Assembly: GCA_964247055.1 (NCBI GenBank)
Contig: OZ176057.1
Span: 1 to 64,000 of the forward strand
Direction of reading: 5' to 3'
Length of the DNA stretch: 64,000 bases
From: Paragordius varius
Lineage: Eukaryota; Animalia; Nematomorpha
This document shows, piece by piece, positions 1-41,500 of this stretch (the first letter of the stretch is position 1; every line of letters starts with the position of its first letter). Both the position numbers and the translations under genes were made by a program. A model generated the notes under the pieces. It ran no database searches, had not been told where the DNA came from, and saw only the letters and a program-made list of their open reading frames with translations.

Positions 1-1
1 C

Positions 2-42
<41 letters not shown>

Positions 43-3000
43 CCCTAGACCCTAACCCTAACCCTAACCCTAACCCTAACCCTAACCCTAACCCTAACCC
101 TAACCCTAACCCTAACCCTAACCCTAACCCTAACCCTAACCCTAACCCTAACCCTAACCCTAACCCTAACCCTAACCCTAACCCTAACCCTAACCCTAAC
201 CCTAACCCTAACCCTAACCCTAACCCTAACCCTAACCCTAACCCTAACCCTAACCCTAACCCTAACCCTAACCCTAACCCTAACCCTAACCCTAACCCTA
301 ACCCTAACCCTAACCCTAACCCTAACCCTAACCCTAACCCTAACCCTAACCCTAACCCTAACCCTAACCCTAACCCTAACCCTAACCCTAACCCTAACCC
401 TAACCCTAACCCTAACCCTAACCCTAACCCTAACCCTAACCCTAACCCTAACCCTAACCCTAACCCTAACCCTAACCCTAACCCTAACCCTAACCCTAAC
501 CCTAACCCTAACCCTAACCCTAACCCTAACCCTAACCCTAACCCTAACCCTAACCCTAACCCTAACCCTAACCCTAACCCTAACCCTAACCCTAACCCTA
601 ACCCTAACCCTAACCCTAACCCTAACCCTAACCCTAACCCTAACCCTAACCCTAACCCTAACCCTAACCCTAACCCTAACCCTAACCCTAACCCTAACCC
701 TAACCCTAACCCTAACCCTAACCCTAACCCTAACCCTAACCCTAACCCTAACCCTAACCCTAACCCTAACCCTAACCCTAACCCTAACCCTAACCCTAAC
801 CCTAACCCTAACCCTAACCCTAACCCTAACCCTAACCCTAACCCTAACCCTAACCCTAACCCTAACCCTAACCCTAACCCTAACCCTAACCCTAACCCTA
901 ACCCTAACCCTAACCCTAACCCTAACCCTAACCCTAACCCTAACCCTAACCCTAACCCTAACCCTAACCCTAACCCTAACCCTAACCCTAACCCTAACCC
1001 TAACCCTAACCCTAACCCTAACCCTAACCCTAACCCTAACCCTAACCCTAACCCTAACCCTAACCCTAACCCTAACCCTAACCCTAACCCTAACCCTAAC
1101 CCTAACCCTAACCCTAACCCTAACCCTAACCCTAACCCTAACCCTAACCCTAACCCTAACCCTAACCCTAACCCTAACCCTAACCCTAACCCTAACCCTA
1201 ACCCTAACCCTAACCCTAACCCTAACCCTAACCCTAACCCTAACCCTAACCCTAACCCTAACCCTAACCCTAACCCTAACCCTAACCCTAACCCTAACCC
1301 TAACCCTAACCCTAACCCTAACCCTAACCCTAACCCTAACCCTAACCCTAACCCTAACCCTAACCCTAACCCTAACCCTAACCCTAACCCTAACCCTAAC
1401 CCTAACCCTAACCCTAACCCTAACCCTAACCCTAACCCTAACCCTAACCCTAACCCTAACCCTAACCCTAACCCTAACCCTAACCCTAACCCTAACCCTA
1501 ACCCTAACCCTAACCCTAACCCTAACCCTAACCCTAACCCTAACCCTAACCCTAACCCTAACCCTAACCCTAACCCTAACCCTAACCCTAACCCTAACCC
1601 TAACCCTAACCCTAACCCTAACCCTAACCCTAACCCTAACCCTAACCCTAACCCTAACCCTAACCCTAACCCTAACCCTAACCCTAACCCTAACCCTAAC
1701 CCTAACCCTAACCCTAACCCTAACCCTAACCCTAACCCTAACCCTAACCCTAACCCTAACCCTAACCCTAACCCTAACCCTAACCCTAACCCTAACCCTA
1801 ACCCTAACCCTAACCCTAACCCTAACCCTAACCCTAACCCTAACCCTAACCCTAACCCTAACCCTAACCCTAACCCTAACCCTAACCCTAACCCTAACCC
1901 TAACCCTAACCCTAACCCTAACCCTAACCCTAACCCTAACCCTAACCCTAACCCTAACCCTAACCCTAACCCTAACCCTAACCCTAACCCTAACCCTAAC
2001 CCTAACCCTAACCCTAACCCTAACCCTAACCCTAACCCTAACCCTAACCCTAACCCTAACCCTAACCCTAACCCTAACCCTAACCCTAACCCTAACCCTA
2101 ACCCTAACCCTAACCCTAACCCTAACCCTAACCCTAACCCTAACCCTAACCCTAACCCTAACCCTAACCCTAACCCTAACCCTAACCCTAACCCTAACCC
2201 TAACCCTAACCCTAACCCTAACCCTAACCCTAACCCTAACCCTAACCCTAACCCTAACCCTAACCCTAACCCTAACCCTAACCCTAACCCTAACCCTAAC
2301 CCTAACCCTAACCCTAACCCTAACCCTAACCCTAACCCTAACCCTAACCCTAACCCTAACCCTAACCCTAACCCTAACCCTAACCCTAACCCTAACCCTA
2401 ACCCTAACCCTAACCCTAACCCTAACCCTAACCCTAACCCTAACCCTAACCCTAACCCTAACCCTAACCCTAACCCTAACCCTAACCCTAACCCTAACCC
2501 TAACCCTAACCCTAACCCTAACCCTAACCCTAACCCTAACCCTAACCCTAACCCTAACCCTAACCCTAACCCTAACCCTAACCCTAACCCTAACCCTAAC
2601 CCTAACCCTAACCCTAACCCTAACCCTAACCCTAACCCTAACCCTAACCCTAACCCTAACCCTAACCCTAACCCTAACCCTAACCCTAACCCTAACCCTA
2701 ACCCTAACCCTAACCCTAACCCTAACCCTAACCCTAACCCTAACCCTAACCCTAACCCTAACCCTAACCCTAACCCTAACCCTAACCCTAACCCTAACCC
2801 TAACCCTAACCCTAACCCTAACCCTAACCCTAACCCTAACCCTAACCCTAACCCTAACCCTAACCCTAACCCTAACCCTAACCCTAACCCTAACCCTAAC
2901 CCTAACCCTAACCCTAACCCTAACCCTAACCCTAACCCTAACCCTAACCCTAACCCTAACCCTAACCCTAACCCTAACCCTAACCCTAACCCTAACCCTA

Positions 3001-3336
3001 ACCCTAACCCTAACCCTAACCCTAACCCTAACCCTAACCCTAACCCTAACCCTAACCCTAACCCTAACCCTAACCCTAACCCTAACCCTAACCCTAACCC
3101 TAACCCTAACCCTAACCCTAACCCTAACCCTAACCCTAACCCTAACCCTAACCCTAACCCTAACCCTAACCCTAACCCTAACCCTAACCCTAACCCTAAC
3201 CCTAACCCTAACCCTAACCCTAACCCTAACCCTAACCCTAACCCTAACCCTAACCCTAACCCTAACCCTAACCCTAACCCTAACCCTAACCCTAACCCTA
3301 ACCCTAACACAAACCCAAACCCTAACCCTAACCCTA
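1..3336. repeat. Telomeric array (CCCTAA)n, i.e. TTAGGG on the - strand; left chromosome end
   Basis: About 555 near-perfect CCCTAA units starting at base 1, with the C-rich strand running from the end as expected for a left telomere. Variant units CACAAA and CCCAAA at 3308-3319, just before the junction. Confidence 0.99.
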
Positions 3337-3538
3337 TAGCAGTATAAAAATTGACGCAGTACTGGCGCATTTTTTTTTAAAAAACTGGCTCAAGGGCCCC
3401 GTTTACCATATAAGAAAATATTTTATAATGGTTTATTAGCTGCTATGCAGATAATATCTATATCAGCACAACAAATTTTTTTGCAAGTTGTTATAAAAAT
3501 CGAAGCTAAAATCCTTTTCCTACGTACCATTTACTAAA

Positions 3539-3772
3539 CAGTAAAAAATGAAATACGGACAAAACGTAAAAATTAGAGGATAAATATTTTTTTCTTGAAG
3601 ATAACCATACTTTTTTAGACCTTGTTTCCTACAGCTATTTACCAATCTACATCTATCGAAATTTCGCAATCTAAAAAGATGTTATCCAAAATAAAAAAGT
3701 ATATAATTCTCTTTTAGAAAAAATAATTGTCTTCTAATTTACGTTTTATCCGTATAATCTAAATTTCTACTG
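3539..3772. mobile_element. MITE (family A), CAGTA...TACTG termini, probably Tc1/mariner-derived
   Basis: Long imperfect TIRs (TACGGACAAAACGTAAA / TTTACGTTTTATCCGTA). Related copies recur through the window, several preceded by TA. Confidence 0.7.
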
Positions 3773-4309
3773 AAAAAAATAATATATAACATCTCTATAT
3801 AATTACATATGTGGACCCATTTTATTAATTACCAGCAATTTTTATGGTATAACTAGGGATGTGCGCTTGACTACTTTTACAAAAAAGTCCGGTCAGACCC
3901 AGTCAGACCATGGTCATCGTCATGACCACTTTTTATTTAAATAAATATCATCCGATATTGGATTGCGAAAATATTGTTCGTACGACACTTGCGTTTCACT
4001 AATAAGGTCATCTTAAAAGTTTATACATTTCTATTAATTATTTACAAATATTTTCATAAAATTTAATCAAGTATTTTGTTTTAAAATAAATTTTGCCACA
4101 TGTTTGTGCCCTTCTAAATCTTTAAATACATAGCTTTTAATACTGGATATTTCAAATGAAATTTTACCTATTTTTTTTTACAATTTCTCTCATCATTGAA
4201 TCCCATTATAAAATGTTTTTTTTATTTTATTGGTTCACATATATGGAATAATTGCATATTTTGCAAAGTGCTCGATAGTTTTGTACATAAAAATAACTGG
4301 ATATGCTTT

Positions 4310-5440
4310 ACACCTCGTTTCAAATCGGGTTATCTTAATACCCCAGATTAAATTTGATTTAGTTTTTTTGAAAAACAACTGAAGATAACGGTCCCAATTT
4401 AAATTTATGCTTCTCTATTAATAAAAACAAATATGGCAAAATATCTAAAATTTTGGACGCCATTTTGATTTCACAAAATTTTTGCAAAATATCGTCTTCA
4501 TTTAATTTTAAGAATAAAATTATAGCTAATTCTATTTAAATTACATCTAACATTAATAGTAGTAAAAAAAGCTATTTATATTGCATTATTTTTCAATTTT
4601 ACCATTGCACACATGTCACGTAGACTAATTATTTACCTTTCGGTTTTAGCCTAAAATAAGTAATATCAGCTATTTTCGATTAAAATTTTTTGTCCATATT
4701 TTTTATAAAATTTAATTCTTAGTCGAATGACTAATATGAATGTGTTGTATCCAAGTGTTAATATAGCATAAAGATAAATCTAAACTAAAATATTTTTTTA
4801 CGATTATACAATATCAGGATTTTCAAAAATATACGCAATAATCACAATTTGGCGTCAAAATTTAAAAAAAAATTTTATTTTTGGCGATATAAAAGTATTG
4901 TTTTCTTTTTTATATGTAATTTAAGACATTTAGTGATTTTTATAGGATTATAAGATTTAGCCAGACAAAATATATTAGCACTTAGATACAACACATTTAG
5001 ATCAGTTTTTCAATTTAAATTGGGGTCGTTGTATACACCAGGCTTATTTAAAATTAATATAAAAAAATCAAAAATATGACACCAAAGCATAAAATTATAA
5101 AATTTATGAACGTGACATGTGTGCATAGGCTTAATATAAAAATCATGCAAAATAAACCACTTCTTTTATATTAATGTTAAATGTAATTTTAATAAAAATA
5201 ACTTTATTTTAGCCTTAAAATCTAAATAACATGAATTTATAAAATGTTGCAAAATAGAAATGCCGTCGATGTAGTTTGGTAAGGACCCTTTTTTTCAAAA
5301 CTAAATTTTAAATAGAAATTTTGTTATTCATATAATTTCTATCAAAAGCATTAATTTTAATTAAAAAGGTTTCTTCTAGTAGATATTTAAAAATATCAAC
5401 TTAAATATTTTATCGGGTTAGATAACCCAATTTGAATCGA
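4310..5440. repeat. ~1.1 kb imperfect inverted-repeat (foldback-like) element
   Basis: TTCAAATCGGGTTATCT (~4320) is mirrored by AGATAACCCAATTTGAA (~5410). TGCACACATGTCACGT with its flank (~4500-4620) is mirrored by ACGTGACATGTGTGCA with its flank (~5110-5220). Confidence 0.6.
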
Positions 5441-6663
5441 AGAGTTAAATTAAATGTGCTTGAGAGCCTATTTTAAATATGGTGCAGTTATAAGGCTGTA
5501 AACCATGAGTGTCATGATACTTTTTGTCAGAATATACCATTTACGATTCAAATTCACTCTCGAACAATTAAATTAATCTCTTGAACAATTCAAGAAAAAT
5601 AAATTATCTGTTTTCCGACTAATATAACTTATTATAAGTATAAAATATATTCTTATAGCATAGTTTATTTTCAGCATTATATTAATTTTATATAAAATTT
5701 CATTATTTTAATATAGTATAGACTAAACAGAAAATTTGTCTTGTCCGCTGCGTAATTAATCTGCTCTGAAAACGGATAGAAACTTATAAATAAAAAGACA
5801 TGCAAACTTTCACATTTTTTTATTTTGGTATGATACTCGTAAACTAAACCATCAGTATTTTTTTTACCGTTAGTAATCATTAAAGATACTAGCAAGTATT
5901 GAAAATATTAGCGAGTTAAATTTTACAAAGAATATTATATCTGTATTATTGTATATATATTTGTAGAGTATTGATAAATTATTGCCCAATGCTTCTATAT
6001 TCTTGCTTTTTTTATATAGGATGTAAGTTACTAAGTATCGCTTGGTTAATAAAACCCTATGTTTACATATTTATAAGATTTTATGAAAACAAAATTAGCC
6101 ATAAGATAAATCACAATGATAAACGATATCTTGTATTTACATAAATTATGATTTTTTAATCGCAATATACTATATAATATCTTATCTCAAACTATATATT
6201 ATAGCTATTTTTTTATGCCTGCTTTTTATATTTTTAAATTGAATTTACAAACACTACACATATTCACCATTCTATTTATACCATTCATTTATTTTTCATA
6301 AGCGCGCATTTATTTTAACCTTTATTCAAATCGATTATCATTATCTGTATTTGAATATACTCAGTTTAATTATATTTTTTCGCTTGGATTTCTTTAATAC
6401 CTTGTTAATTTTGAATTACTTTTATGCCGTTCCAGCTTTTTAAATTAGTCGTACCATTTTTAATCCCTATTTTCGCTTATTTTTAATTTTGCATCAAATT
6501 TAAATTTTTTTAATATGGAAATAATTAATTATTTTAATATGGAACAAATATTAAATTTTCTCTACAAATCTTTTTGTACCATTTTTGTCTTTCAATAAAA
6601 TTCATATTCGTTAAAGTATGTAATAATTTTCAAATATTTTTGATTACAGATGTAATATTCCAT

Positions 6664-6729
6664 AGGTCCATAATGTTATTTTTATTTTTGGAGATTTGGT
6701 CTTTCCCTGGCGTGTACACAGAAGTGGCC
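6664..6729 (+). pseudogene. U2: Degenerate, internally deleted U2 copy in the opposite orientation
   Basis: AGGTCCATAATGTTATTTTTATTTTTGGAGATTT matches the local U2 at 30/34 nt, Sm site included. It is followed by CCTGG..CAGAAGTGGCC, similar to the U2 end CCTGG..CAGGAGTGGCC, and by a similar 3' flank (ATTTGAAACATTTT vs ATTTAGAAACAATTTT). Weak similarity may extend to ~6610. Confidence 0.75.
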
Positions 6730-6862
6730 TGATAATGAAATACTATTTGAAACATTTTATAATTTTTTCTTAAGTTTTCGAGTTCTTTATAAGAACCTTA
6801 TCATTTTATAAACTTTTTCCAAAGTTAAAAAATTGTTTCTAAATTGATTTTATGATTGTGTT

Positions 6863-7013
6863 TGGGCCACTCCTGGAGGTACTGCAATACCAGGTTGACC
6901 CGATGGGGAGAGATAGGCAAGCCCAGAGCGCCTCCCCAAAATCTCCAAAAATAAATTTAATATCATGGACCTCTTTAGAGGTCGTATCAGATATTAAGCT
7001 GATAAGAACAGAT
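6863..7013 (-). ncRNA. U2: U2 snRNA gene, 3' fragment (remainder of the interrupted gene)
   Basis: The reverse complement reads ATCTGTTCTTATCAGCTTAATATCTGATACG, then stem IIb GACCTCT-AA-AGAGGTC, Sm site AAATTTATTTTTGG, stem III, and stem IV CCTGG-TATTGCAGTACCT-CCAGG. It continues the U2 sequence that stops at 12607, with one T missing. The 3' end is approximate. Confidence 0.97.
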
Positions 7014-7284
7014 TTTAATTTATTAATAAACAAAAAAAAAAAATATATATACATGTTTTAATATATGATTGTGATTTGTATATAGGTAAATATGAAGAAA
7101 TGCAATGCAAAGTTCACAATTTGATATGATTATATGTTAATGATTTTAATAAATGTTTATTATTTTAGTTTTTATTTTATGCTACTCTTTTACTAGTTCA
7201 CCCAAAAAAAACTCCTCAGTGAGGAGAAAAAATTTGAAGGAAGGTGGGGTGAACTGGAAACCGAAGAAAAATCTCGAAGAGAGA

Positions 7285-10200
7285 TTAAAAAACTTCGGAA
7301 GAAACCAAAGAAAAGGGGGCGCTGGAGGTTGTAGGCTCTTGGCTAGGAGCAGAAGTCGGAGTCAGAAAGGGGGGATTTGGTTGGGGCCGGATGGTTCCGG
7401 ATTTGAATTCGTGCCACAGCTCCGAGGACAAATGGATGGTAGAACTAATCATGAGTCTGCGGAGGCGCGGAATATCGTTCGCACGGCATAATTTTTTTAG
7501 GACAAGGTCGTTAGGAGGATACCAAGCCCCAAGGGCTCCGACAATTAACGGTAAAACTTCAACAGTATCGTTTTCTTTTTCGAAAAAGGATATTAGGGGA
7601 GAGTATTTTGATATTTTCGCTTCATGGGAACGGGTCAGACTAGCAAACTGGTTTTCAAAAGGGACACTGGCGTCGATAATATATAAAGCATTAGAAGATT
7701 TTAAGACCAAGTCAGGCTTTAAGGGGAAGGGGCGCACAAATTCGTCTTCAAATAAAATTTCAAAACCGTATTTTAAGTTATTTTTGAGGAGGGTTAGAAT
7801 TCGATTATGGCGGAATCTCCACGATTGGGAATATTGGAGGCAGTGGTTAAGGATATGGGGGAGGGTCTCTGGAAACTTACCACATCGCCGACAGGAAGGG
7901 TTTTTTTGTGAGCCTGGCCTACAGTTTATTGGGAGTAGGTTAAGTCGGGCACGGTGAATGAAATTCCAATCGCTAAAGGATGTATAAAGACCAGAAGAAA
8001 GGAAATGGGAACTGGCTTTGTGATGGTGGACAGCGTCAAGGACTTTACCTTGGCTGGGTGAGTTAAGAATTTCTTTTAGGTCTTCACTTTTTATTTGGGA
8101 GGAAATGGATTTTACGATGGCTTTCCGGGAGTTGGGGTCGATGCGAAAGTTTGAGCCTTCGATGAAAATAAGATTATCAGTAAAAACCCATTTTATATTA
8201 AGACGCGAAGAGGCCAGTCTGGATATTGAAAAAATATTGGAAACGCCAGATGCGGGCAGGTTGGAAACGCCGGATAGGAATTCGGATAGGTCAGCTTCAG
8301 TAGGAGAAGGAGTTTTAAAGCGCTGGCTAACCGTGAGTTTGAGTTCCTCTTTTGCCATTTCTGCAATAAGGGGGTCGGGACTAGTTAGGATTTTGTATGT
8401 GGAATCTATTTTATAGATATCGCATAGCGAAGAAAGGCGATTGAAACCTAGTCCCCCGGACTTTGTGTCGATATAAAAGTAAGCAGTCGCTGCACCTTGG
8501 GGAAGTGAAGTCAATGATTTAAGGTTTGCGCGAAGGTGAGTGTCGATTGAGGAAAGGTCGGATTTTAGTACCGATCCAAGACGAAGTTTGTGATGGGTGG
8601 TTGGCATAATAAAAAGTTTTAAGGCGTCGCATTTTTGCCATGGGGTCAGGGAAGATGATATAATTTTGTCAATTAAAAGGTTAAAGTTTGAAAGTTTGTC
8701 TGGAGCTATCAGAAACCCAACAGGTTTTCCCAGAAAATCATGGGATTCACCATCGAGGAGGCATGGGATAGGGTGGTCGTCAATAGATAAATGAAGGGGG
8801 CGCAACCCGTTGGGGTGGGGTTCGTAATTAAGGATTCGGGACTTTGATGGGTTAATTTTAATGCCAATAGAAGATAGGAAGGAGTGGGTAAGGGCAATTG
8901 CGCTTTTCAGAGAGTCGGGGCTATCAGTGATGATAGTTAGGTCGTCAGCGAAGGCCAAGCAGGAGGTGAGGGGTCGATTGTTAAGGGCTATGATAATGGG
9001 GTTAATACACAAATTAAAGATTAGGCCGGAAAGGGGGCACCCCTGCTTGATTCCTTTAAGATAGGGAATGGGGTCGGTCAGGTTTTTATCAATTAAAAAT
9101 TGGGTGGAAGAATTAAATAAAATGAAATTTAGAAGGCTTTCAAGGGGTGGGGGCAGGCCAAGGGACGATAAAATTTGGGTGCAGACAGGCAGGGGAATCG
9201 AGTCGAATGCGGCGGAAACGTCCAGCCATAGAAAGATGGTCTGGTGGTTCGCTGTACGGGCCTTCGACAAGCGGTTGGAAATGTAATAATCATGTTCCAA
9301 CACGCCGTCGAAGGGGGAAAACCCTTTTTGTTGAGGGGCGATAAGATTGTGGAGGGCTACGTGGTGGCTGAGGAATTTATGGATAATTTTAGCGAAGATT
9401 CGATATATTATATTAGAAATGGCGATGGGGCGAAAATTGGAGGGGTCGGAAGTGTCGCCTTTTTTATGAATTAAGATGGAAAAAGATTGAAGCCATGCTT
9501 TGGGGACGGTTTGGAGTAGAAGGCATGTTTCAAAGACCTTGGAAATAATCAGGAAGTTGGGGTCTATAAGGCGCCAATGAGAGGCGGACATACGGTCAGG
9601 GCCGGGCGTAGAATTTAAGCAGGCGTTGAGAGAGCTACTTATTAACTCTTTAGAGAATTCTGGAAATGGCATAGTTGGAGGGGGAGTGATATCGGGTATA
9701 GAATCAGGAGTATAATCAGAGGGGCCAAACCGGTTTTTAAAAAAGGAGAAAACATTATTTAAGGAAGCACTGCACCTAGATGGATTGGGATCAATTATGG
9801 AGCGGATGGCTTTCTTTTTATTTTTATTATACAAGCGGCGGAGATTAAGTTGGGGCATGCCATGGGATATAGGGTTTTCGAGTTTGAGACTGACTCTTGC
9901 TTCAAAGATTAGTTCGTCGTACACAGAATTGAATTCCTGGGCATTTGTGACGGAGGAGAGACGTTCAATTAATTGAGAGAGTGACAATCTGATGTTGTTG
10001 TAGTCAGGTCTGTTAGATGGCCGACTAGAAGAATTGGTGGAGACTCTTGTGGGTTCATCAGGTGTATTATCAGCAGTAGGAGGGTGTTGATTGGTGGGGG
10101 GTAGTTGTTTGATATTCGTCTTTGTTCTCTTCATCGTACGTTTGGGTGGTAATCGACTGTTGTTTGGGAGGATTAGACTCATCAGTGGGATTGGATCTGC

Positions 10201-11496
10201 ATTGGTTTGATTATTATTGTTACGATTGGCGTGAGGACTATCTGAGATGTTTTTAGTATTACTATTGTTGTGTTCTCGCCTGCTGGTATTGAGTTTTTCT
10301 TGATGGTGGATAATACGCGGATACCTGTTGTTGGGGACATCAGAATTGGTACGATTGTGGAAGTTATCATTAGGGGTGTCAACGTGGCTGTTATCTTTGT
10401 GTCCATTGGTTGTTTTGTTCACAGATAAAACCTCGTAACGGTTGGTCAAATCAATCAAGGTTGGGTTGTTCATGCGCCGTTTTAACCAAGCTGGAGAGTG
10501 TCTAGCTCTTTTAGCCGGTGGAGTTTTGGGTGAGGATTGATTGTGTAAACTGGAAGCTGATGTCATGAGACAAGGTTTAGGAGGACAGCTTGATAATTGG
10601 TTTTTGACGGGTGATGACATGTATGGAGATTCGCGATACTTGTAGAGAGGTGGAAGTGATAGACTCATGAGTGAGGGAATATTTCGTGGATTTCTTGGTG
10701 GGGTCATCATGAGATTATTAAAGGATGCCATTGGAACTCGTTGGATTGGAGTAAAATTTTTTGAAGGTTGGGGATTGCGAGTGACAAGTGGAGGATATTG
10801 ACTGCGTGAGGAAGGTAGGTGACCTAGATTGTGAGATATTCGTTGGCTGGGAGGGGTGTGATGAGCATGTGGAACCAAGTGCGATGAATTAGTCGGAGTG
10901 ACTGAAAGTGAATTTGGAGAGTAGAGCTGGAGATTAGATGTTGTTGGAAGTTGTGAATTTAAGGCCTGAGCGTAGGTTGGTCTGGCGTTCGGAGGATGGG
11001 GACTCCATGGTATAAGAACGGGGGAACGCCTCAGTGGGGGTGACCAGTGAAAAGGGGCACGGGATATGAGTGGAGAGACTGGGTGGATACGCCAAGGTTG
11101 CTGCTGGGATTGTCGATTAAGGTAGCTGTTAAAACCGAGAGAAGCTTTTTTATGCGTGTAAGTATGGTTTGCCAAACCTTGATTGCTGGGGAAGGATTCA
11201 GGACAGAGACGGCATTTGAAAGGGTTATTAGAATTTTTTAACATAACTCTATCCTTAAGACAGGGGTGGCGAGACGGTTTAGAAGATATATACTGTCTAC
11301 AAAGCGAGCAGAATTTGAAAACTTTTGTGATAAAAATATTATGATTTATTCTTAAATGGCGCAGAAGAGAGTGACGCGAGATGTACCATTCATGGCCCGA
11401 GAAAGATGCAGGGCATCCTGTTTCCGAGCAAAAAAACGTTTGGGGGATCGGGAATGAAATAAATAAAGAATTATTGTCTCTTTGCGGTTTGGACAT
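7285..11496 (-). CDS. Utopia ORF: three N-terminal zinc fingers, low-complexity linker, reverse transcriptase, CCHC knuckle, restriction-like endonuclease
   Basis: Zinc fingers CSETGC..RHLRINH, CSLC..HPC and CRLC..NHTYTH. RT motifs TPGPD, KKGD..NFRPI, QKGF, LDVSAAFDS, GIKQGCPLS and FADD. Knuckle CRRC..ETLPHILNHC, then RHN, KPDLV, IIDASVPFE and KISKY (PD-D/ExK). Uninterrupted reading frame. Confidence 0.97.
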   Translation of the reverse strand: MSKPQRDNNSLFISFPIPQTFFCSETGCPASFSGHEWYISRHSLLRHLRINHNIFITKVFKFCSLCRQYISSKPSRHPCLKDRVMLKNSNNPFKCRLCPESFPSNQGLANHTYTHKKASLGFNSYLNRQSQQQPWRIHPVSPLISRAPFHWSPPLRRSPVLIPWSPHPPNARPTYAQALNSQLPTTSNLQLYSPNSLSVTPTNSSHLVPHAHHTPPSQRISHNLGHLPSSRSQYPPLVTRNPQPSKNFTPIQRVPMASFNNLMMTPPRNPRNIPSLMSLSLPPLYKYRESPYMSSPVKNQLSSCPPKPCLMTSASSLHNQSSPKTPPAKRARHSPAWLKRRMNNPTLIDLTNRYEVLSVNKTTNGHKDNSHVDTPNDNFHNRTNSDVPNNRYPRIIHHQEKLNTSRREHNNSNTKNISDSPHANRNNNNQTNADPIPLMSLILPNNSRLPPKRTMKRTKTNIKQLPPTNQHPPTADNTPDEPTRVSTNSSSRPSNRPDYNNIRLSLSQLIERLSSVTNAQEFNSVYDELIFEARVSLKLENPISHGMPQLNLRRLYNKNKKKAIRSIIDPNPSRCSASLNNVFSFFKNRFGPSDYTPDSIPDITPPPTMPFPEFSKELISSSLNACLNSTPGPDRMSASHWRLIDPNFLIISKVFETCLLLQTVPKAWLQSFSILIHKKGDTSDPSNFRPIAISNIIYRIFAKIIHKFLSHHVALHNLIAPQQKGFSPFDGVLEHDYYISNRLSKARTANHQTIFLWLDVSAAFDSIPLPVCTQILSSLGLPPPLESLLNFILFNSSTQFLIDKNLTDPIPYLKGIKQGCPLSGLIFNLCINPIIIALNNRPLTSCLAFADDLTIITDSPDSLKSAIALTHSFLSSIGIKINPSKSRILNYEPHPNGLRPLHLSIDDHPIPCLLDGESHDFLGKPVGFLIAPDKLSNFNLLIDKIISSSLTPWQKCDALKLFIMPTTHHKLRLGSVLKSDLSSIDTHLRANLKSLTSLPQGAATAYFYIDTKSGGLGFNRLSSLCDIYKIDSTYKILTSPDPLIAEMAKEELKLTVSQRFKTPSPTEADLSEFLSGVSNLPASGVSNIFSISRLASSRLNIKWVFTDNLIFIEGSNFRIDPNSRKAIVKSISSQIKSEDLKEILNSPSQGKVLDAVHHHKASSHFLSSGLYTSFSDWNFIHRARLNLLPINCRPGSQKNPSCRRCGKFPETLPHILNHCLQYSQSWRFRHNRILTLLKNNLKYGFEILFEDEFVRPFPLKPDLVLKSSNALYIIDASVPFENQFASLTRSHEAKISKYSPLISFFEKENDTVEVLPLIVGALGAWYPPNDLVLKKLCRANDIPRLRRLMISSTIHLSSELWHEFKSGTIRPQPNPPFLTPTSAPSQEPTTSSAPFSLVSSEVF

Positions 11497-11894
11497 TTGA
11501 GTAATTAAATTAAAATGACATTAAGATAAATATGTATGTTGTGGGAAGGAGTCGGGGTAAGAATATCAAAAAAAAAAGGGGGAGATATGTGATAAAGTAT
11601 AAAATATCCATCAAAAAAAAATAAATTAAAATGAGCGATATGTATAATTAGAGTTGAAAATAAAGTGTGTACAGAAGATGGGTATATATAAAAATCAATA
11701 GTGATTAAGTAGCAATTATAATAAAAAAGTAAGGAAAGATAATAAAATATCATTTACCATAGATTAAAGAGCGTTATGTATACCATATGAAAGCAAGCTT
11801 ATTGAAGAACCAAGTGATGGGTGGTATAAATAAAATTTTTGAATTCATTAAATTTTGGGCTTGAGTGTGTTGTTATTTTCACGGAGAAATTTTC

Positions 11895-12255
11895 CGGATT
11901 GTATAGGAGGCAGATAAGACAGAAGTGTGACAACCAGGGATAAATTTTGAAGTAAATTAGTTAAGATTTCCGCGAGTTTGCTTTTGGTGAGTTGAGAAAA
12001 TGTAATAGGTGAGAGGTTAAAGATAAAATTGGTAGGCTTTCCAAGTTAAAGTTGCGAGGATTAATTAATCCGGATTGTATGAGATGCAGAAGATTGACAA
12101 CCAGGGATCCGATGCAAAAAAGTGGAATAAATTTAATGGAATTCGTTAAGATTTCCGCAAATATGCTGTTTTTAGAGGGAGTTGACAGAATGTGATAGGA
12201 GTAGGGTTGAAGATAAAATTGGTAATTTTTCCAAGTTAAAGTTTTGAGAATTAAT
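11895..12255 (-). repeat. Diverged two-copy tandem repeat (~175-185 bp unit) in the Utopia 5' UTR
   Basis: The blocks CCGGATTGTAT, GACAACCAGGGAT, GTTAAGATTTCCGC and AAGATAAAATTGGTA..TTTCCAAGTTAAAGTT each occur twice in the same order. Confidence 0.8.
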
Positions 12256-12606
12256 AAAATTAATTATGAAGAGAATTAAGACGGATATAACCAAACTAAT
12301 GAATGTAAAGAATATATGTTTAATAAAAATTTTCAAAGAAAATATAAAAAGTTTCGAAGGAATAACAAAGTTTCAAAAGGATAAACACAGAAGTAATAAA
12401 CTTCCGCCTCCCAAATAATATCAGGAAGGGCGGAAGGATGGGTCACGAGACCACGCGAAAAGTGTGTAGCTTATGCGATATAGCCGAAGGGAATTAGATG
12501 ATGATTAGGATAAGGATCGATGATGTAATATGTATAGTGATTGGATTAAATGAGATATAATTTAAATTTAATAATAATAGATGGATGTAATATAAAGAAT
12601 TTGCTT

Positions 12607-12643
12607 CTACACTTTGATCTTAGCCAAGAGGCCGAGAAGCGAT
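12607..12643 (-). ncRNA. U2: U2 snRNA gene, 5' fragment (nt 1-37), interrupted by a retrotransposon
   Basis: The reverse complement reads ATCGCTTCTCGGCCTCTTGGCTAAGATCAAAGTGTAG, the conserved U2 5' end, and stops inside the branch-point recognition sequence GUAG|UA. Confidence 0.97.
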
Positions 12644-12684
12644 AACCACATACAAATTTGCGCCTCTCAATATAAATTTATTTA

Positions 12685-12705
12685 TTCCGCTAATTTTGGG
12701 CATTA
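12685..12705 (-). promoter_or_regulatory. Putative snRNA proximal sequence element (PSE) of the U2 gene
   Basis: TAATGCCCAAAATTAGCGGAA begins 62 nt upstream of U2 +1. Its position and TAAT.CCCAA start resemble the insect PSEA as I recall it; not tested against other snRNA genes of this genome. Confidence 0.5.
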
Positions 12706-15700
12706 CCAATTAAAAAAATTTTGATTTGCAACTCCTATGGTTGAAATAAGCATTTTTTTAGCTATCGAATGATACCAAATACTCTATATATCGATTTACA
12801 TATCTATTATTTTGTAATTTTGCCAATTTTTATCATATTTTTATAAATATATGCTTTCTATCAACATTTTATCCATTTGTTTGTTAATTGCTCATCTTCG
12901 TTTTGTATGTATTATCTTTCCCCCATGTTATGTTATTCGAATACCAATATCCATATTTTTATGATACTAGATACGGAATTTAATAAATATTAACTGAATT
13001 TTATATAGTTGTCTTTTGGAGGTAAATATAATTTTAAAGAGAATAATATTAAGATAAAAAATTGGAATTTAATAAGAAGAAAAAATTAATTATTTTTTCA
13101 TTATTCATAATTTGAAATAAGTGGAAAATTTCAAGTTATATAAATCAAAATATTTATTGTAACGATTTTAAGAATTTATAGTAACAGATGATAACATAAC
13201 GGAATAATTTTATTATCAAAAAAGAAATAATTTATTACAAACAATAAAAAGTTGAAAAATCTATAAAAGGAAGATAAAATTGTAACGAAATGTTCAAAGT
13301 CAAAAAAGGAATACAAAATAATTATTGCTAATGAGAAAGAAAAAAGGAGGCATAAAAATTTGAATCGTAATCATGTTATGGAGAAAATAAGGTTTTTCTT
13401 TTTTATTCGCGTATTCAAATGTTTTATAATGCTTATTAAGTGCAATTTCCTTCTTGTATAAAAGTTTTTAAACGGAAAGTAAAAAAAGATTTTACCATAT
13501 CGAAAGATAAGACGCCGTGATAATTGTTTACTTTTAAGATGTGTTTATATATCTTGGTAGCGAAATAACAAAATTTTGCATAAGGTATAATAAATTTAAG
13601 TTTGATGGTTGTAAATTAAAATTTATTTTTAAAAATCATAAAAATTCTAACACATGTATCTGTAAAAAAACTTTTGATGTCCTTAAAATATGGAGTATAT
13701 ATATAAAAATAATGCATACATAAAAGAAATGTTATAATGTGCAAATGTCAGATGAACGTTACAGAAAAGTATGAACAAAGGACGGTATTTTGTTTATTTT
13801 TTTTTGTTCTTTTAACATAACAAGAGATGAAATATAGATTGTATGTGTTTTCTTGTGAGTATTCAAGTTTACATTTTATCAAAAAGTTGCTTTTCCATGT
13901 GTGAATGTTTTGAGTTTAAAAACCGATACACTATATAGGTGTTTACTATAACATAATTAAATAATTTAAATTTATGTTAGTACTTTAATTAAATATCTTT
14001 CAAAAGCATTCGCTAAGCTAATGTCAATATCGTGCAAAGTTGTTTAAACCAATCGTGTACCGTCTAAAAATTATCACAGTAAAATCTTGATTTTGTGAAT
14101 GAATTTAATTACACTAGGTGTATTTTCAAGTTTCCAATTATAATCAGTGGCACCCAAGGCGAGTCTTTTTTGCGGAGCACAGAAATAATTTTCATAAAAC
14201 AGAAATGAAATAATATTTCAAGCAAAAATAAATTTCTAAATATTTTAAGTAAAATTAATTTTACTTTTCATTTTATAGAATACGTTTTTAAAACTTGTCC
14301 ATTTACATATCTGCTGACCATCTTAAATACAACGTAGATAACCATTTTATCTATAAAGTGGACTATTTTTAAGGATTTATATTACTTTGATAATTTTTAA
14401 CAACATTCAATGCAATTTATTCATAAATCCTTAATCCCCTTGCTTACTATATTTTTGGTAAGTTAGGTAAATAGATCTTTCTTCGCCCCCACATTTTTAA
14501 AGCCTTAAAAGGTATTCACCCATAGTCATATTGGATTCATTTGCAAATATCTTTTATTTTATTAAAAATATTTTAAAACATTGGACAATCTAATTAAGCG
14601 TAAATATATTTTTGTGCAAACTATCATGCTAAAAAACAAACAAATTAAAATAAAGTACATTAATCGATACTAAGATATTACAAATATTCTAAATTAACAT
14701 AATAGGTACATTCAAAACCAAAAAACGCAGATGACATGTGAAACTTTCATTAAGAGTAATAATCGTTTACATTCACGAGTTATTCTTGGGTGTTTTAAAT
14801 GGGTAAAAGGGTAATTTTTTATGTCTATTGATATGTAAAAATTTTTTGTTTTTAATGGCTAAATTTTTTATAATTATAGTGAAAAATAGTGTTATAGATA
14901 AACAGACATGTAATTTAAATCCCCAACTAGCCATTTATAATACCGAAATTTTCCTATGATAGCTCTTGTTTTTGGACTATCTATACAGTTTCAAGCATGT
15001 TAACCCATCATCAGTTCGACACAATTATTAGAACCTATAAATCCAAATCTGTTATTATGTGTAAGAGAATATAGTTTTTTTGCTACATTTTGCGCTTTTT
15101 TATCATGTAAAAGACTCACTCAATCAACCATCAGACCCCACCACCAGCATAAAGGGGCATTTAAAATAAATCATGCATTTATAATTAATTTTTTTTAAAT
15201 TTTGTTTAAATTATATCTTATTATATTCTTATGTTTTAGTTATTACATTGAAAAGGATACTGCCATGAATCGAAATTTTTGGATATAGTTTAATTTAATA
15301 AATTTTATGAGAATTCAAATTATTACTTTAATTTAAGAATGTATCCCTCACCAAGAAACTAAAAGTATTTAGAAACACAATTTAAGTATAATTTGCTTAA
15401 AGTTAAAATAAATACTTAATGAAATAAATAATCTCTTTTTCTTTTCCGTCTAAAAAAGATATCCCCATATTTTCTTATTTGATCTGAATCAGAAATGGTG
15501 GTTTCTTGCTACATTAGATGGCATATACCTATATATAAACGCAGTTTTTTATATGTTACTAAATATTTAATTACAGTTTTAATTTAACATCTATAATATT
15601 TTGACTAGGATTTCAAAGTCCTCAATGGTATAATTTAAAAAACTGCATTTAGAGGTCTTTTATGTAAAAATTATTGATATTGCACACAAAAATTTAGATA

Positions 15701-20373: not shown

Positions 20374-23215
20374 ATGACTGTTCCGAAAAAAACTAATTCC
20401 TGTGATGTGTTTTTACGCATTGGTACGTGGAACTCTCGCGGCACCACCAACAAAATCGAAGTTATCATAAAAGAAATGGTGAAACTCAACATAAGTATAT
20501 TAGGAATAGCAGAATCCCACATTCCGTTAAACGGCCACATAGAATATGAAAATCACATCCTATTATACTCAGGTCATGATACTCTTAAACGAAACGGTGT
20601 GGCCCTAATAGTAACCAAATCAATCGCCAACGCATCCGAAATTCACCACCCACACAGCGATCGCATAATATCACTTCGATTAAACTCGTCTCCACAACCA
20701 ATAACGATATTCCAAATCTATGCCCCTACCAACTCTAACAACGAAGAAGACTCCGAACAATTTTACGAGGATCTCAGTTCAGCTATTGAGAAAGTTCCTA
20801 AAAAAGACATGATATTTGTTTTGGGCGACTTTAATGCGATAGTAGGTAACGATAATACACATCAAATCACTGGTGGGAAAGGATTGGGAAAAAAAGATAG
20901 AGGAGACCGCCTCATAGAATTTTGCAGTGAACACAAATTATTCATATCAAACTCCTTTTTCCAACAACCTAAGCGAAGCCTATACACATGGATTTCACCT
21001 TGCAAGAGGCACAGAAACCAAATTGACTTTATTCTCGGTATGCAAAAATATAAATCTTCCTTTATGAACGTAAAAACCTACCCCGGTTCCGACTGCTATT
21101 CTGATCATAATCTCCTTGTAGCTAAACTAAAAATTAAAACAGTTCTCTCACGCAAACCAAAACTTCTGCATAAACCTAAATTAGTCTGCGATCTCCCCCG
21201 AGTTTCCTTTGTTACTTGAAAACAGATTTAAAACACTCGAAATAGACGATGACGCTGAAAATCTTTGGAATACAATACAAAATATCACTAGCACTACAGC
21301 CAGCGAATGCATCCCTATCCAAAAATCCCATCTTAACAAAATTAAGCTATCACAAAAAAGTTTAGATTTGGCGGACAAACGGCGCCAAGCTAAACGCAAT
21401 AATAATATGGCAGAGTACAAATCACTTAACGCAGAGTTCCAAAAAAGCGCTCGGGAAGACAAAAACGATCACTACAATCAGCTGTGCTTAAAACTAGAAA
21501 ACGCTGCTAAACATAACAACAACTACTTTGCTGAAGTAGATCACATTGCTCCACGTACGTCTAAAATCTACAAAGGCCCAATGAGAAAGGAAGATGGAGA
21601 TATCATCACAGACAAGAAAACACTGGTGGAACAATGGGAACAATATGTATTAAAACTATACGGCTCCAGTCCATCGAACGCCGATAAAAACAGTAAGATC
21701 TATCAACATGACCCGCCGATCATCAAAGAAGAAGTCGAATGGGCGCTCAACCATTCCCCAAACAACAAATCTGAGGGGTACAACGATTCCAACCGAACTT
21801 ATTCGTTTTATCCCAATTCATATCCTAACTGACTTATTCCAAAAGATATTTGCCCACGCCTCATTCCCCCAAGACTGGTGCAAATCAATACTCATCCCCA
21901 TCTTGAAAAAAGGCGATCCTAAATCATTTAACAACTATAGAACTATAGCGCTAATCAATCAAGCATCAAAAGTTTTCCTCAAAATAATTCACAGGCGTAT
22001 CCAAGGCATAATTGAAGCCGAACTTTCTAATACTCAAGCGTGATTTAGATCCAATCGCGGATGCAGGGACATGATCAGCAATATACGTTGGATATTCGAA
22101 AAACAAATTGAATCTCAGAAAGAAACCCACATCTGCTTCATTTTACAAAAGCCTTCGACAGCGTGAAACACGACACGCTGCGGAAGGCACTATCTCAGAT
22201 GGGAGTTTCAGATCACATTTTAAACATCATAAAATCCCTCTATTCCAATTCATCACTAAACATAAAAACCCCACATGGCACAAGTAATTGGGTACAAATG
22301 AACAATGGTTTAAGACAAGGATGTGTCCTTTCACCCACTCTTTTCAATGTCTGCATAGAAAGCGTATTACGGAACATAGATAAAACCAATGGTATAAGCA
22401 TTGCCGGCAATATTATATCATCACTTCACTATGCTGATGACACTCTGCTGTCAAACTCAGTGGACAACATGAAAAAAACTCCTAACTGAATTCTCAAACG
22501 AATGTCAAAAATTTGGATTGACGATCAACTTTAAAAAAACTAAAATCATGATTATAAACGCTCATAACCACTATAACAACTTATCTTTTCACAACCAACA
22601 AATAGAAGTAGTGTCCCAATACACTTACCTAGGCAGTCTCATAAATACAGCAAACAACAGCACCCTAGACATCAAAAGAAGAATAGGAATTGCTAAGACA
22701 AAAATGATAAAATATAATAAAATATGGTCACCACACGACATCAAACTTAAAACAAAAATCCGTTTAGTTAAAGCCCTAATATTTCCTGGCATACTATATG
22801 CATCAGTAAGCTGGACAATAAAAAAGGTAGACGAAAAATACATTAGCGCCTTCGAAATCTGGTGCTGGCGGAAGGCACTTCAAATCACTTGTAAAGATAA
22901 AGTAAAAAACACTGTAATCCTTGAAAAAATAAACCCCGAGATACACCTGATTGGCATGTGCCTCAAAATGAAATTATCATACTTTGGTCACATTACCAGA
23001 GCTAATGACTTGGAATTCCAACTAATGACAGGCAAGGTCGAAGGATCCAGGAAACGTGGACGCTGCAAGATGCGCTGGATTGAAAACCTAACCAAAGAAA
23101 CCAATCCCTCTTTACAACAGTTAACATCACTCACTTATAATCGAATAAACTGGAGAAAATACACCTTCGAAAAAGCAATAAATCGACAACGATCTTTGCT
23201 ACAATAATAATATGA
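20374..23215 (+). mobile_element. RTE-clade LINE (AP endonuclease-RT), pseudogenised
   Basis: APE motifs IGTWN, GIAESH, QIYAPT, LGDFNA, QIDFI and SDHNLL. RT motifs PILKKGD..NYRTI, GLRQGCVLSP and HYADD. RTE-type C-terminus GKVEG.RKRGR...RW and an (AAT)n tail. Split over five ORFs by frameshifts and a QA*FR stop. The 5' end is not defined. Confidence 0.92.
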
Positions 23216-38540: not shown

Positions 38541-41500
38541 ATCACCTTCATCCATCCTAATACTGAAACGTCGCGGTTTCGGTGACGGATGGATGTAAAC
38601 CGAATATACGAATATCCATTAAAACAGTTGCATCAATCAGGTCAAAGTCTTACAAAAAACCGTCCTGCAAAATATGTTCAAATTGGTTCTAAGCCAATCC
38701 TCTAACATTCTTAACTCCATCTATCGTAATACTGAAAAGGGGTGGTTTCGGTGACGGATGGATGTAAACTCAATATACGAATATCCATTAAGACAGTTGC
38801 ATCAATCAAATCCAAGTCTTAGAAAAAACCGTTCGGCAAAATATATTCAAATTGGTTCTAAGCCAATTCAACCAACATTCCTAACTCCATCTATCCTAAT
38901 ACTGAATAGGGGTGGTTTCGGTGGCGGATGGATGTAAACTCAATATACGAATATCCATTAAGACAGTTGCATCAATCAGGTCCAAGTCTTACAAAAAACC
39001 GTCCGGCAAAATCTGTTCAAATTGGTTCTTAGCCATATCAACCACCAATCTTAACTCCATCTATCCTAATACTGAAAAGGGGTGGTTTCGGTGGCGGATG
39101 GATGTAAACTCAACATACGAATCATTAAGACAGTTGAATCAATCAGGTCCAAGTCTTACAAAAAACCGTCCGGCAAAATCTGTTCAAATTGGTTCTCAGC
39201 CAATCAACCAATTTTCTTAACTCCATCTATCCTAATACTGAAAAGGGGTGGTTTCGGTGGCGGATGGATGTAAACTCAATATACGAATATCCATTAAGAC
39301 AGTTGCATCAATCAGGTCCAAGTCTTACAAAACCGTCCGGCAAAAACTGTTCAAATTGGTTCTAAGCCAATTCAACCAACATTCCTAACTCCATCTATCC
39401 TAATACTGAAAAGGGGTGGTTTCGGTGGCGGATGGATGTAAACTCAATATACGAATATCCATTAAGACAGTTGCATCAATCAGGTCCAAGTCTTACAAAA
39501 AACTGTCCGGCAAAATCTGTTCAAATTGGTTCTCAGCCAAATCAACCACCAATCTTAACTCCATCTATCCTAATACTGAAAAGGGGTGGTTTCGGTGGCG
39601 GATGGATGTAAACTCAATATACGACTATCCATTAAGACCGTTGCATCAATCAGGTCCAAGTCTTACAAAAAACCGTCCGGCAAAATCTGTTCAAATTGGT
39701 TTTCAGCCAAATCAACCAACCTTCTTAACTCCATCTATCCTAATACTGAAAAGGGGTGGTTTCGGTGGCGGATGGATGTAAACTCAATATACGAATATCC
39801 ATTAAGACAGTTGCATCAATCAGTCCAAGTCTTACAAAAAACCGTCCGGCAAAATCTGTTCAAATTGGTTCTCAGCCAAATCAACCACCAATCTTAACTC
39901 CATCTATCCTAATACTGAAAAGGGGTGGTTTCGGTGGCAGATGGATGTAAACTCAATATACGAATATCCATTATGACCGTTGCATCAATCAAGTCTAAGT
40001 CTTACAAAAAACCGTCCGGAATCTGTTCAAATTGGTTCTCAGCCAATCAACCAACCTTCTTAACTCCATCTATCCTAATACTGAAAAGGGGTGGTTTCGG
40101 TGGCGGATGGATGTAAACTCAATATACGAATATCCATTAAGACAGCTCCATCAATCAGGTCCAAGTCTTACAAAAAACCGTCCGGCAAAATCTGTTCAAA
40201 TTGGTTCTCAGCCAATCAACCAACCTTCTTAACTCCATCTATCCTAATACTGAAAAGGGGTGGTGGTGGCGGATGGATGTAAACTCAATATACGAATATC
40301 CATTAAGACCGTTGCATCAATCAGGTCCAAGTCTTACAAAAAACCGTCCGGCAAAATCTGTTCAAATTGGTTCTCAGCCAAATCAACCAACCTTCTTAAC
40401 TCCATCTATCCTAATACTGAAAAGGGGTGGTTTCGGTGGCGGATGGATGTAAACTCAATATACGAATATCCATTAAGACAGTTGCATCAATCAGTCCAAG
40501 TCTTACAAAAAACCGTCCGGCAAAATCTGTTCAAATTGGTTCTCAGCCAATCAACCAACCTCCTTAACTCCATCTATCCTAATACTGAAAAGGGGTGGTT
40601 TCGGTGGCGGATGGATGTAAACTCAATATACGAATATCCATTAAGACAGTTGCATCAATCAAATCCAAGTCTTAGAAAAAACCGTTCGGCAAAATATATT
40701 CAAATTGGTTCTAAGCCAATTCAACCAACATTCCTAACTCCATCTATCCTCCTAATACTGAATAGGGGTGGTTTCGGTGGCGGATGGATGTAAACTCAAC
40801 ATACGAATATCCATTAAGACAGTTGAATCAATCAGGTCCAAGTCTTGCAAAAAACCGTCCGGCAAAATCTGTTCAAATTGGTTCTCAGCTAATCAACCAA
40901 TCTTCTTAACTCCATCTATCCTAATACTGAAAAGGGGTGGTTTCGGTGGCGGATGGATGGAAACTCAATATACGAATATCCATGACCGTTGCATCAATCA
41001 GGTCCAAGTCTTACAAAAAACCGTTCGGCAAAATCTGTTCAAATTGGTTCTCAGCCAATCAACCAACCTTTTTAACTCCATCTATCCTAATACTAAAAAG
41101 GGGTGGTTTCGGTGGCGGATGGATGTAAACTCAATATACGAATATCCATTAAGACCGTTGCATCAATCAGGTACAAGTCTTACAAAAAACCGTCCAGGCA
41201 AAATCTGTTCAAATTGGTTTTCAGCCAAATCAACCAACCTTCTTAACTCCATCTATCCAAATACTGAAAAGGGGTGGTTTCGGTGGCGGATGGATGTAAA
41301 CTCAATATACGAATATCCATTAAGACCGTTGCATCAATCAGGTCCAAGTCTTACAAAAAACCGTCCGGCAAAATCTGTTCAAATTGGTTCTCAGCCAATC
41401 AACCAACCTTCTTAACTCCATCTATCCTAAAACTGAAAAGGGGTGGTTTCGGTGGCGGATGGATGTAAACTCAATATACGAATATCCATTAAGACAGTTG

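Follow-up and report, generated by a model that had tools for sequence, protein, structure and literature searches.

The window analysed here is a stretch of 64,000 nucleotides at the start of contig OZ176057.1 of Paragordius varius (Nematomorpha; assembly GCA_964247055.1). It holds a U2 snRNA gene whose 3' end lies 3.5 kb from the telomere repeat and which is cut in two by a non-LTR retrotransposon (Table 1). Read along the minus strand, the first 37 nt of U2 (12643-12607) run directly into a 5.59-kb element (12606-7013), which is followed by the remainder of the gene (7012-6857). Both parts were matched by Rfam, the 3' part at 6857-7044(-) with RF00004 (124 bits, E 8.5e-25) and the 5' part at 12550-12643(-) (43 bits, E 2e-6); no rRNA was found in the window, and both flanks of the element are U2. 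The intact U2 gene of the same species (L001:1501-1695) was used as the reference for the split gene. Compared with it, the 5' piece (nt 1-37, 12643->12607), which terminates in GTGTAG, is identical at 37 of 37 positions and the 3' piece (nt 39/40-195, 7013/7012->6857) at 156 of 157; the interrupted halves thus carry one mismatch in 194 nt, indicating that the insertion is recent relative to the decay of its flanks. Across the site the intact gene reads GTGTAG-TA-TCTGTTC. T38 is missing from the split gene and A39 is possibly missing as well, because the last base of the element is itself an A and the alignments with one or two lost nucleotides are equally good. Comparison of both junctions with intact U2 revealed no target-site duplication (TSD). 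The initial annotation had placed the break at nt 37, within the branch-point recognition sequence and close to the telomere, and had reported no TSD; the junctions bear out both statements, and Rfam agrees on the split. Its loss of a T also stands, but the loss of that base only is just one of two equal readings.

Table 1. Features of the split U2 gene and its inserted element (positions in the window)
Feature	Position	Strand	Details
Telomere repeat (CCCTAA)n	1..3336 (~3336)	.	Read directly; last ~35 bp degenerate
U2 snRNA 3' part, TCTGTTC to 3' end	6857..7012	-	Species nt 40-195; human numbering nt 39 onward
Ambiguous base A	7013	-	U2 A39 or final element base
Utopia-type non-LTR retrotransposon (family A), full length, 5,594 bp	7013..12606	-	Borders from comparison with intact U2 and the empty locus L001; same orientation as U2
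3' UTR, 272 nt, without poly(A) tail	7013..7284	-	One GC-rich hairpin; fold z -2.1
Single intact ORF, 1403 aa	7285..11496	-	dN/dS 0.16 against second intact copy
CCHC motif and restriction-like endonuclease (RLE)	7603..7893	-	C1202, C1205, H1214, C1219; D1262, D1275, K1294/K1297
Reverse transcriptase (RT), aa 676-890	8827..9471	-	Pfam RVT_1, E 6.7e-34; FADD active site aa 849-852
N-terminal three-zinc-finger module	11152..11430	-	aa 23-52 C2H2-like, 63-79 CCHC, 95-115 C2H2
5' UTR, 1,110 nt	11497..12606	-	~190-bp tandem duplication (11955-12068 and 12140-12258)
U2 snRNA 5' part, nt 1-37	12607..12643	-	Ends GTGTAG, within branch-point recognition sequence GUAGUA
U2 upstream (promoter) region	12644..13643	-	In subtelomeric block paralogous to empty U2 locus, right end of contig C1

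The ORF of the element, which had been described as complete, is indeed open over its whole length. Of the three fingers in its N-terminal module, the first and third were detected by the motif scan, with a Pfam zf-C2H2 match at aa 93-117, and the second was read by eye from the family-A translation; a linker of about 400 aa rich in P, S, and N lies C-terminal of the module. The RT domain can be aligned to the R2 proteins 9nl2, 9dou, and 8gh6, with invariant columns present in the alignment of the relatives. The CCHC/RLE region aligns to the C-terminal zinc-binding and RLE region of R2, and its residues are invariant or nearly so among 16 relatives. In these alignments to R2 proteins and relatives, all catalytic residues of the window ORF are intact. 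Pfam detected no Myb, APE (Exo_endo_phos), or protease (Peptidase_C48/Ulp1) domain in the ORF, and for Myb there was no match even at E<=5 in the N-terminal 560 aa. At E<=10, neither an R2-like HDV ribozyme nor any other Rfam family besides U2 was found in the element, and the fold of its 5' end was no better than that of shuffles (z -0.7). An AATAAA motif stands at 7024->7019, 6 nt ahead of the element/U2 junction.

About 260 kb of assembly sequence was read for the genomic copies, a subset of them in full. All 30 of the U2 3' pieces examined start at one base (|TCTGTTC), although they lie behind at least nine different element families as defined by 3'-end type. Four 3' ends of family A exist in the genome, each followed by U2, and the same holds for 26 of the 26 other U2-family 3' ends seen; the non-U2 majority of flanks that would have spoken against the site specificity proposed initially was therefore not observed. 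A second full family-A copy at C3:290876-296474 has junctions identical to those of the window copy. These two copies are coding-intact, the elements are 96.6-98% identical, and the values between them (dS 0.053, dN 0.0086, dN/dS 0.16) show that they diverged under purifying selection. Because the copies differ by 2-3%, neither is a very recent insertion derived from the other. Other copies are truncated on the 5' side with constant 3' ends (C3:349037, C3:342690, and C4:7260, the last of which retains U2 1-39), which is typical of target-primed reverse transcription (TPRT). The count of inserted against empty U2 genes that had been proposed as a check gave about 35 split copies and 5 full-length genes (2 canonical and 3 divergent), and among canonical U2 targets, 12 were split and 2 intact. 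This is a further example of an animal that can be left with very few functional U2 genes.

The closest proteins elsewhere are 35-39% identical to the window ORF, and the best match among 5.8 billion proteins is 39%. As far as this could be tested, the proposal of an undescribed family therefore holds, and no near-identical described family was found. A metagenome scan with a generic RT motif returned mostly distant RTs; among 19 screened metagenome loci, none had U2 and two had 28S flanks. Two trees were used, a rapid one under a site-heterogeneous model and a more thorough one with 22 rows, both from rows without curated Repbase/Dfam references for Utopia, NeSL, and R2. In the RT-RLE tree, the window element falls inside a 42-sequence clade (SH-aLRT 99) whose other members include oomycete (RNase H-bearing), sponge, cnidarian, nematode (Ulp1-bearing), wasp/ant, turtle, dragonfly, aphid, and spider sequences, and two metagenome elements with 28S rRNA flanks are left outside as the outgroup. 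This position, next to sequences from known Utopia host groups, fits Utopia; membership is probable on the grounds of the host taxa, the hallmarks of the domains, and the common target. The initial description of a Utopia-like RLE element at U2 is accordingly consistent with the architecture, the exact site, the absence of a TSD, and the tree position, the last of these read among rows without labelled Utopia sequences.

In published Utopia elements, the U2 3' flank begins at nt 39, 5' borders vary, and arthropod families lack a TSD (Kojima and Jurka 2015, PLoS One 10:e0140084, PMC4640811). The element described here shares with them the insertion point, which lies between G37 and T40 of U2 as numbered in this species, and the 3' flank from TCTGTTC (nt 39 in human numbering), the single ORF with one to three N-terminal zinc fingers, RT, CCHC, and RLE, and the precise 3' and variable 5' borders without TSD that are known from the arthropod families. 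It also shares the co-residence of several families per genome and the excess of split over intact U2. It differs in that no protein in the searched database exceeds 39% identity to that of family A, in that its host group is outside the published list, and in that it is about 1 kb longer than its local sister families owing to the 1.1-kb 5' UTR and the low-complexity linker. Moreover, some of the U2 targets belong to a subtelomeric block that recurs at five chromosome ends, and a U1-inserting lineage is nested in this genome's radiation. The nearest solved structures are those of R2 (9nl2, 9nl3, 9dou, and 8gh6; E 2e-52 to 2e-32), with which the element has in common the RT, CCHC, and RLE core, precise 3' junctions without poly(A), and presumably the chemistry of TPRT. 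However, R2 was rejected as an identification, since family A targets U2 instead of 28S, has no 28S flank, lacks the Myb domain that marks R2 and has been used as a criterion for it (Genome Biol 2026, 27:174), has no detectable HDV-like 5' ribozyme, and is separated in the tree from the 28S-flanked elements. NeSL-1 belongs to the same broad clade, and Ulp1-bearing nematode sequences lie within the 42-sequence clade, but it was rejected as well because family A has no Ulp1 protease and its target is U2, not the spliced-leader genes. Keno, a U2-specific element of the Tx1/L1 group, shares the U2 3' flank and insertion point with Utopia (Kojima and Jurka 2015, PMC4640811); it encodes an APE-type endonuclease, whereas the ORF here has an RLE and no APE, and it was also set aside. 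A Dada-type DNA transposon was rejected because RT is present. We consider it very probable that the window element represents a new Utopia-clade family, here called A, which homes to one U2 position, and that this copy is full-length and coding-intact. Only the family and the host are new here; elements of this kind are known, and no new mechanism is involved. In the literature searched, we found no link between Utopia and this host group, which the published host list lacks. Among target-specific retrotransposons, the most widespread lineage gains a host group and several deep families.

Since five chromosome ends carry paralogous copies of the U2 block and subtelomeres exchange sequence, the element-bearing U2 unit might have been copied to this end by segmental duplication or gene conversion with no insertion here, and the 99-100% identity of the split halves to the functional gene could result from conversion as well. 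The flanks, however, make this very improbable. The block contains an empty paralogous U2 locus at another chromosome end (C1:15223126, L001), and the window flanks resemble this empty locus at 87% upstream (over 1 kb) and 77% downstream. Against the second full copy, the homology does not extend beyond the U2 unit, and the flanks are either 74% identical in the promoter region (about 240 bp, in C3-type U2 loci) or unrelated. The U2 genes at the three further ends are occupied by three other families. These comparisons support the view that the window copy would be an independent insertion and not a copy of the C3 locus. One subtelomeric U2 block that is empty at one end and carries four families at the same nucleotide at four ends offers a clean natural experiment.

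It is also conceivable that the element descends from a different RLE lineage (R2-, NeSL-, or HERO-like) and came to target U2 convergently, like the APE-type Keno; the trees are free of labelled Utopia references, and the U1-inserting sister of family B suggests that targets do switch in this group. We regard this as very improbable, given that the exact nucleotide, the junction without TSD, and the order of domains are all as in Utopia, that the closest relatives come from Utopia host groups (spiders, aphids, Hymenoptera, turtles, Ladona, and oomycetes with RNase H), and that the clade excludes the 28S-inserted elements with a support of 99. More weight should be given to the suggestion that the element, though a true Utopia, has reached a dead end, with an ORF intact only through youth and a family A that no longer transposes. 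Just two intact copies exist, no identical pair was found, and the empty canonical targets are nearly exhausted. Nevertheless, a dN/dS of 0.16 means that the two copies accumulated their differences while selection maintained a functional protein, the catalytic residues are all in place, and the interrupted U2 has hardly decayed, so that we think a dead end unlikely, although not far-fetched. The intact ORF with a defined DNA target would also make family A a candidate for R2-style targeted insertion; this is speculation, with no sign that it would outperform known elements.

If the process resembles that of R2, the N-terminal zinc fingers may bind U2 DNA, and the RLE would nick the bottom strand opposite A39/T40, with the nick priming reverse transcription at the 3' end of the element RNA. 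The top strand would be cut 2 nt upstream, after G37, and a cut at this place would produce both the loss of 1-2 nt of target and the absence of a TSD. In 8 of 9 U2-targeting 3'-end types and also in the U1 family, an AATAAA motif stands no more than 12 nt from the end, and in almost all families the distance is 4-8 nt; together with the precise 3' junctions lacking poly(A), this suggests a step in which the template RNA runs a few bases into the 3' half of U2 and this tag may pair with the nicked target, fixing the start point. We speculate that transcription of the window element may begin at the U2 start site and yield a U2(1-37)-element chimera, in which short U2 tags at both RNA ends would lead to seamless junctions; we hold this less firmly than the change of target discussed below. 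Very few intact U2 genes are kept by the host. New targets may come from duplication of the U2 block in subtelomeres.

Another family of this genome is inserted in U1 snRNA genes at about nt 19-21 (L061). It is the well-supported sister of the U2-targeting family B, with 50% protein identity, and is nested among families A-D. Judging from this placement, the Utopia radiation in this animal probably includes a natural change of target between U2 and U1. If this is true, Utopia is not strictly a U2 lineage, and matched RLE pairs with different snRNA targets would be available for mapping the determinants of specificity. The three-finger module of family A also occurs in families B and D and in the U1 family.

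The U2 snRNA gene near the left end of the window is split by an element of a known kind, a Utopia-type retrotransposon, which is a new family (here family A) in a host group absent from the published host list. Telomere repeat, (CCCTAA)n, was read directly over the first ~3.3 kb of the window, and the U2 3' end of the split gene lies 3.5 kb from its inner edge. U2 at 6857-7044(-) is the sole Rfam family at gathering score in the window, and a permissive Rfam scan of the window added a second U2 piece, 12550-12643(-). In the two identical intact genes (L001, L002), the site reads ...AAAGTGTAG-TA-TCTGTTCTTATCAG..., and comparison with them upheld the split gene and the absence of a target-site duplication (TSD) described in the initial annotation. 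Its statement that one T was lost needs qualification: T38 is missing, but A39 is ambiguous, being lost too if the last base of the element, an A, is not assigned to U2.

Coordinates of the split U2 gene, its inserted element and related U2 and U1 loci (G000, P. varius assembly; C, contigs; L, loci read from them)
Feature	Location	Strand	Details
U2 5' part, nt 1-37	12643->12607	-	Ends GTGTAG; comparison with intact U2
Inserted foreign DNA, 5,594 bp	12606->7013	-	Comparison with intact U2
U2 3' part	7012->6857	-	Restarts at TCTGTTC; Rfam and comparison with intact U2
5' UTR, 1,110 nt		-	Tandem duplication of ~190 bp inside, 11955-12258; units 81-84% identical
3' UTR, 272 nt		-	Ends ...AATAAATTAAAA, without poly(A) tail
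Paralogous U2 block	Window 3337-13643; L001, L009, L012, L014		6.6-8.6 kb from five contig ends: C8-left (window), C4-left, C6-left, C6-right, C1-right
Divergent full-length U2, 74% identical	L005 (G000:C4:2626169-2626361)		Branch-point box GTAGAA-CTCG vs GTAGTA-TCTG
U1-inserting element	L061 (G000:C6:3724001-3731000), ~1141-5241		Intact 1280-aa ORF, RLE; U1 pieces 1122-1140 and 5242-5388
U1-family copy, 5'-truncated	L063 (G000:C8:178301-184000), 1641-4489		99.6% identical to L061; ~180-183 kb, ~120 kb beyond the window on the same contig

The ORF, which had been called complete, is indeed one open frame of 1403 aa (7285..11496(-)). It begins with a module of three zinc fingers, the first C2H2-like (aa 23-52), the second CCHC (63-79) and the third a classical C2H2 (95-115), and a long proline/serine/asparagine-rich linker, followed by a reverse transcriptase (RT; Pfam RVT_1, aa 676-890, E 6.7e-34; FADD at 849-852), a C-terminal CCHC motif (C1202...C1219) and the PD...D...K residues (D1262, D1275, K1294/1297) of a restriction-like endonuclease (RLE). 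The CCHC and RLE residues align with the corresponding part of R2 proteins whose structures are solved (9nl2, E 1.9e-52) and are invariant or nearly so in an alignment of 16 relatives, and a domain search of the ORF detected no Myb, APE, RNase H or Ulp1 domain. No ribozyme or other RNA family in the element was matched by Rfam, so none was found that could trim a U2-element chimera, should transcription start at the U2 promoter, and the element's 5' end folds no better than shuffled sequences.

The target specificity of family A was borne out by a DNA search across the whole 110.6-Mb assembly, in which all four family A 3' ends (C8:6857, C3:290717, C3:348878 and C3:342531) directly abut the U2 3' half. 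A second full-length copy, C3:290876-296474, keeps a frame of 1410 codons intact and shares the window copy's 5' junction exactly, GTGTAG|AAGCAAATTC, and the remaining copies are 5'-truncated or rearranged, which is what target-primed reverse transcription predicts. The two intact ORFs share 98% protein identity, with dS 0.053, dN 0.0086 and dN/dS 0.16; their differences therefore arose in lineages needing a working protein.

Split U2 genes outnumber intact ones. A census by two independent and agreeing searches, with the Rfam model and with BLAST using the intact gene, found five full-length U2 genes (two identical canonical genes, a pair of variants on C2 with 82% identity, and the variant on C4) and ~35 3' pieces whose first base falls at nt 38-40. 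When the count is restricted to sequences sharing 97% or more identity with the canonical gene, it gives 2 intact and 12 split. The C4 gene may be a pseudogene or else a variant that the Utopia target sequence would no longer match. The 3' junction was |TCTGTTC in 30/30 loci read, although the element 3' ends preceding it are of at least nine types. The 5' junction varies with the family: it follows G37 in families A and D, T35 in B, and A39 in a C copy that is truncated (B, C and D being the genome's other U2-targeting families). AATAAA lies within ~12 nt of the end in 8/9 U2-targeting 3'-end types and in a U1-inserting family. In nearly every Utopia family here and in the U1 family, AATAAA(T) stands 4-8 nt before the last base with no poly(A) (window 7013-7030; L006-L030), a regularity well beyond what AT-richness by itself would produce. 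We also observed a ~280-kb graveyard of U2 and Utopia sequences at C3:245000-528000 (L022-L030, L035-L060), with dozens of decayed U2 3' halves, one intact canonical U2 at its edge (C3:526786) and inverted pairs of family-A-like RT fragments recurring every ~40-80 kb, a spacing that suggests large segmental duplications.

The U2 block occurs at five contig ends, at every one of which U2 points toward the chromosome end. Four are occupied at the same nucleotide by four families (A at C8-left, B at C6-left, C at C4-left and D at C6-right), and C1-right is empty, its intact U2 at C1:15223126 sitting 7.5 kb from the contig end. The window U2 shares 87% identity with this empty locus over the upstream kb and 77% over the downstream kb. 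Copying of an already occupied U2 unit to the window is argued against by the other full family A copy on C3, whose flanks are unrelated outside the U2 unit and whose promoter region is just 74% identical to the window's. Because its flanks match the empty C1 locus and not the other full copy, the window copy is an insertion into a subtelomeric-type U2.

Utopia elements of Phytophthora and Nasonia have a 3' flank starting from U2 nt 39 (the human numbering of nt 40 here) and variable 5' borders; no TSD is seen in arthropods, several families share a genome, and disrupted U2 genes exceed intact ones (Kojima and Jurka 2015, PMC4640811). The site, 5' borders, lack of TSD, co-resident families and excess of split U2 in P. 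varius match this description point for point. In a search of 5.8 billion proteins, the best RT-RLE matches were just 35-39% identical, in keeping with the earlier suggestion of an undescribed family. Spiders, aphids and a plant bug supplied the first of them, followed by sawfly, ant, dragonfly (Ladona), sea turtle, cnidarians and sponges; the matches further included Ulp1-bearing nematode and RNase H-bearing oomycete proteins, largely the Utopia/NeSL host groups and two domain hallmarks of PMC4640811. Within its own genome, family A is 48% identical to C, 44% to D and 38% to B by protein search. Maximum-likelihood trees united these families in one clade (99/98), arranged as (B + U1-inserting family), (D,(C,A)) and sister to a spider/aphid/tick group, inside a 42-sequence clade (SH-aLRT 99) that leaves out two 28S rRNA-flanked metagenome elements, used as R2-type outgroup. 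Judged by co-clustering host groups and hallmarks rather than by Repbase references, the phylogenetic placement of family A is consistent with Utopia rather than proven. Our literature searches found nothing linking Utopia with Nematomorpha, and nothing after 2015 combining Utopia, restriction-like endonuclease and U2 snRNA. The window contributes a comparison of filled and empty subtelomeric sites, an estimate of dN/dS, a census of U2 genes and a tree of the families.

Junction positions, constant 3' and variable 5' ends, 5' truncations and catalytic residues were observed directly, and the remaining insertion steps are inferred from the R2 paradigm. By this analogy, the zinc fingers would place the protein at its U2 DNA target, the RLE would nick the bottom strand opposite A39/T40, and the 3'-OH of the nick would prime cDNA synthesis on element RNA. 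The top strand would be cut 2 nt upstream of the nick, which would cost 1-2 nt of U2 and leave no TSD. Transcripts may end a few bases into the U2 3' half, the nicked target pairing with this template and synthesis starting at the last element base; such a read-through template is suggested by AATAAA just before the end and the lack of poly(A) in DNA copies.

The U1-inserting family is 35% identical in protein to the window ORF and 50% to family B. At L061, where the insertion splits a gene for U1 snRNA near nt 19-21, the junctions are ATACTTACCTGGCGCGGAG | element | ACCAATCGTGATCATGAAGG, and the element ends ...AAATAAATAAAT without poly(A). In the trees the family pairs with U2-targeting family B as its sister (100/100) and is nested in the local Utopia radiation, and an AU test rejects the U2-targeting families as a clade without it (p 5.5e-6, for a group named after the tree was seen). 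The L063 copy, nearly identical to L061, has no U1 sequence following it and so is a very young off-target insertion. The sole U1-targeting element known in 2015 was the DNA transposon Dada-U1 (Kojima and Jurka 2015, PMC4640811), and our literature search found no report of a later non-LTR element targeting U1; what is new here is the nesting of such a family within Utopia. Elsewhere in the window, 38549-54820 is a satellite array (170-bp unit, 96 copies, 95% matching, 40% GC vs a 25% GC background), and three consecutive ORFs at 20374-23207(+), of which the first encodes an endonuclease domain of APE type (Exo_endo_phos, E 9e-10), probably represent a broken LINE of that type, with no relation to the Utopia insertion.
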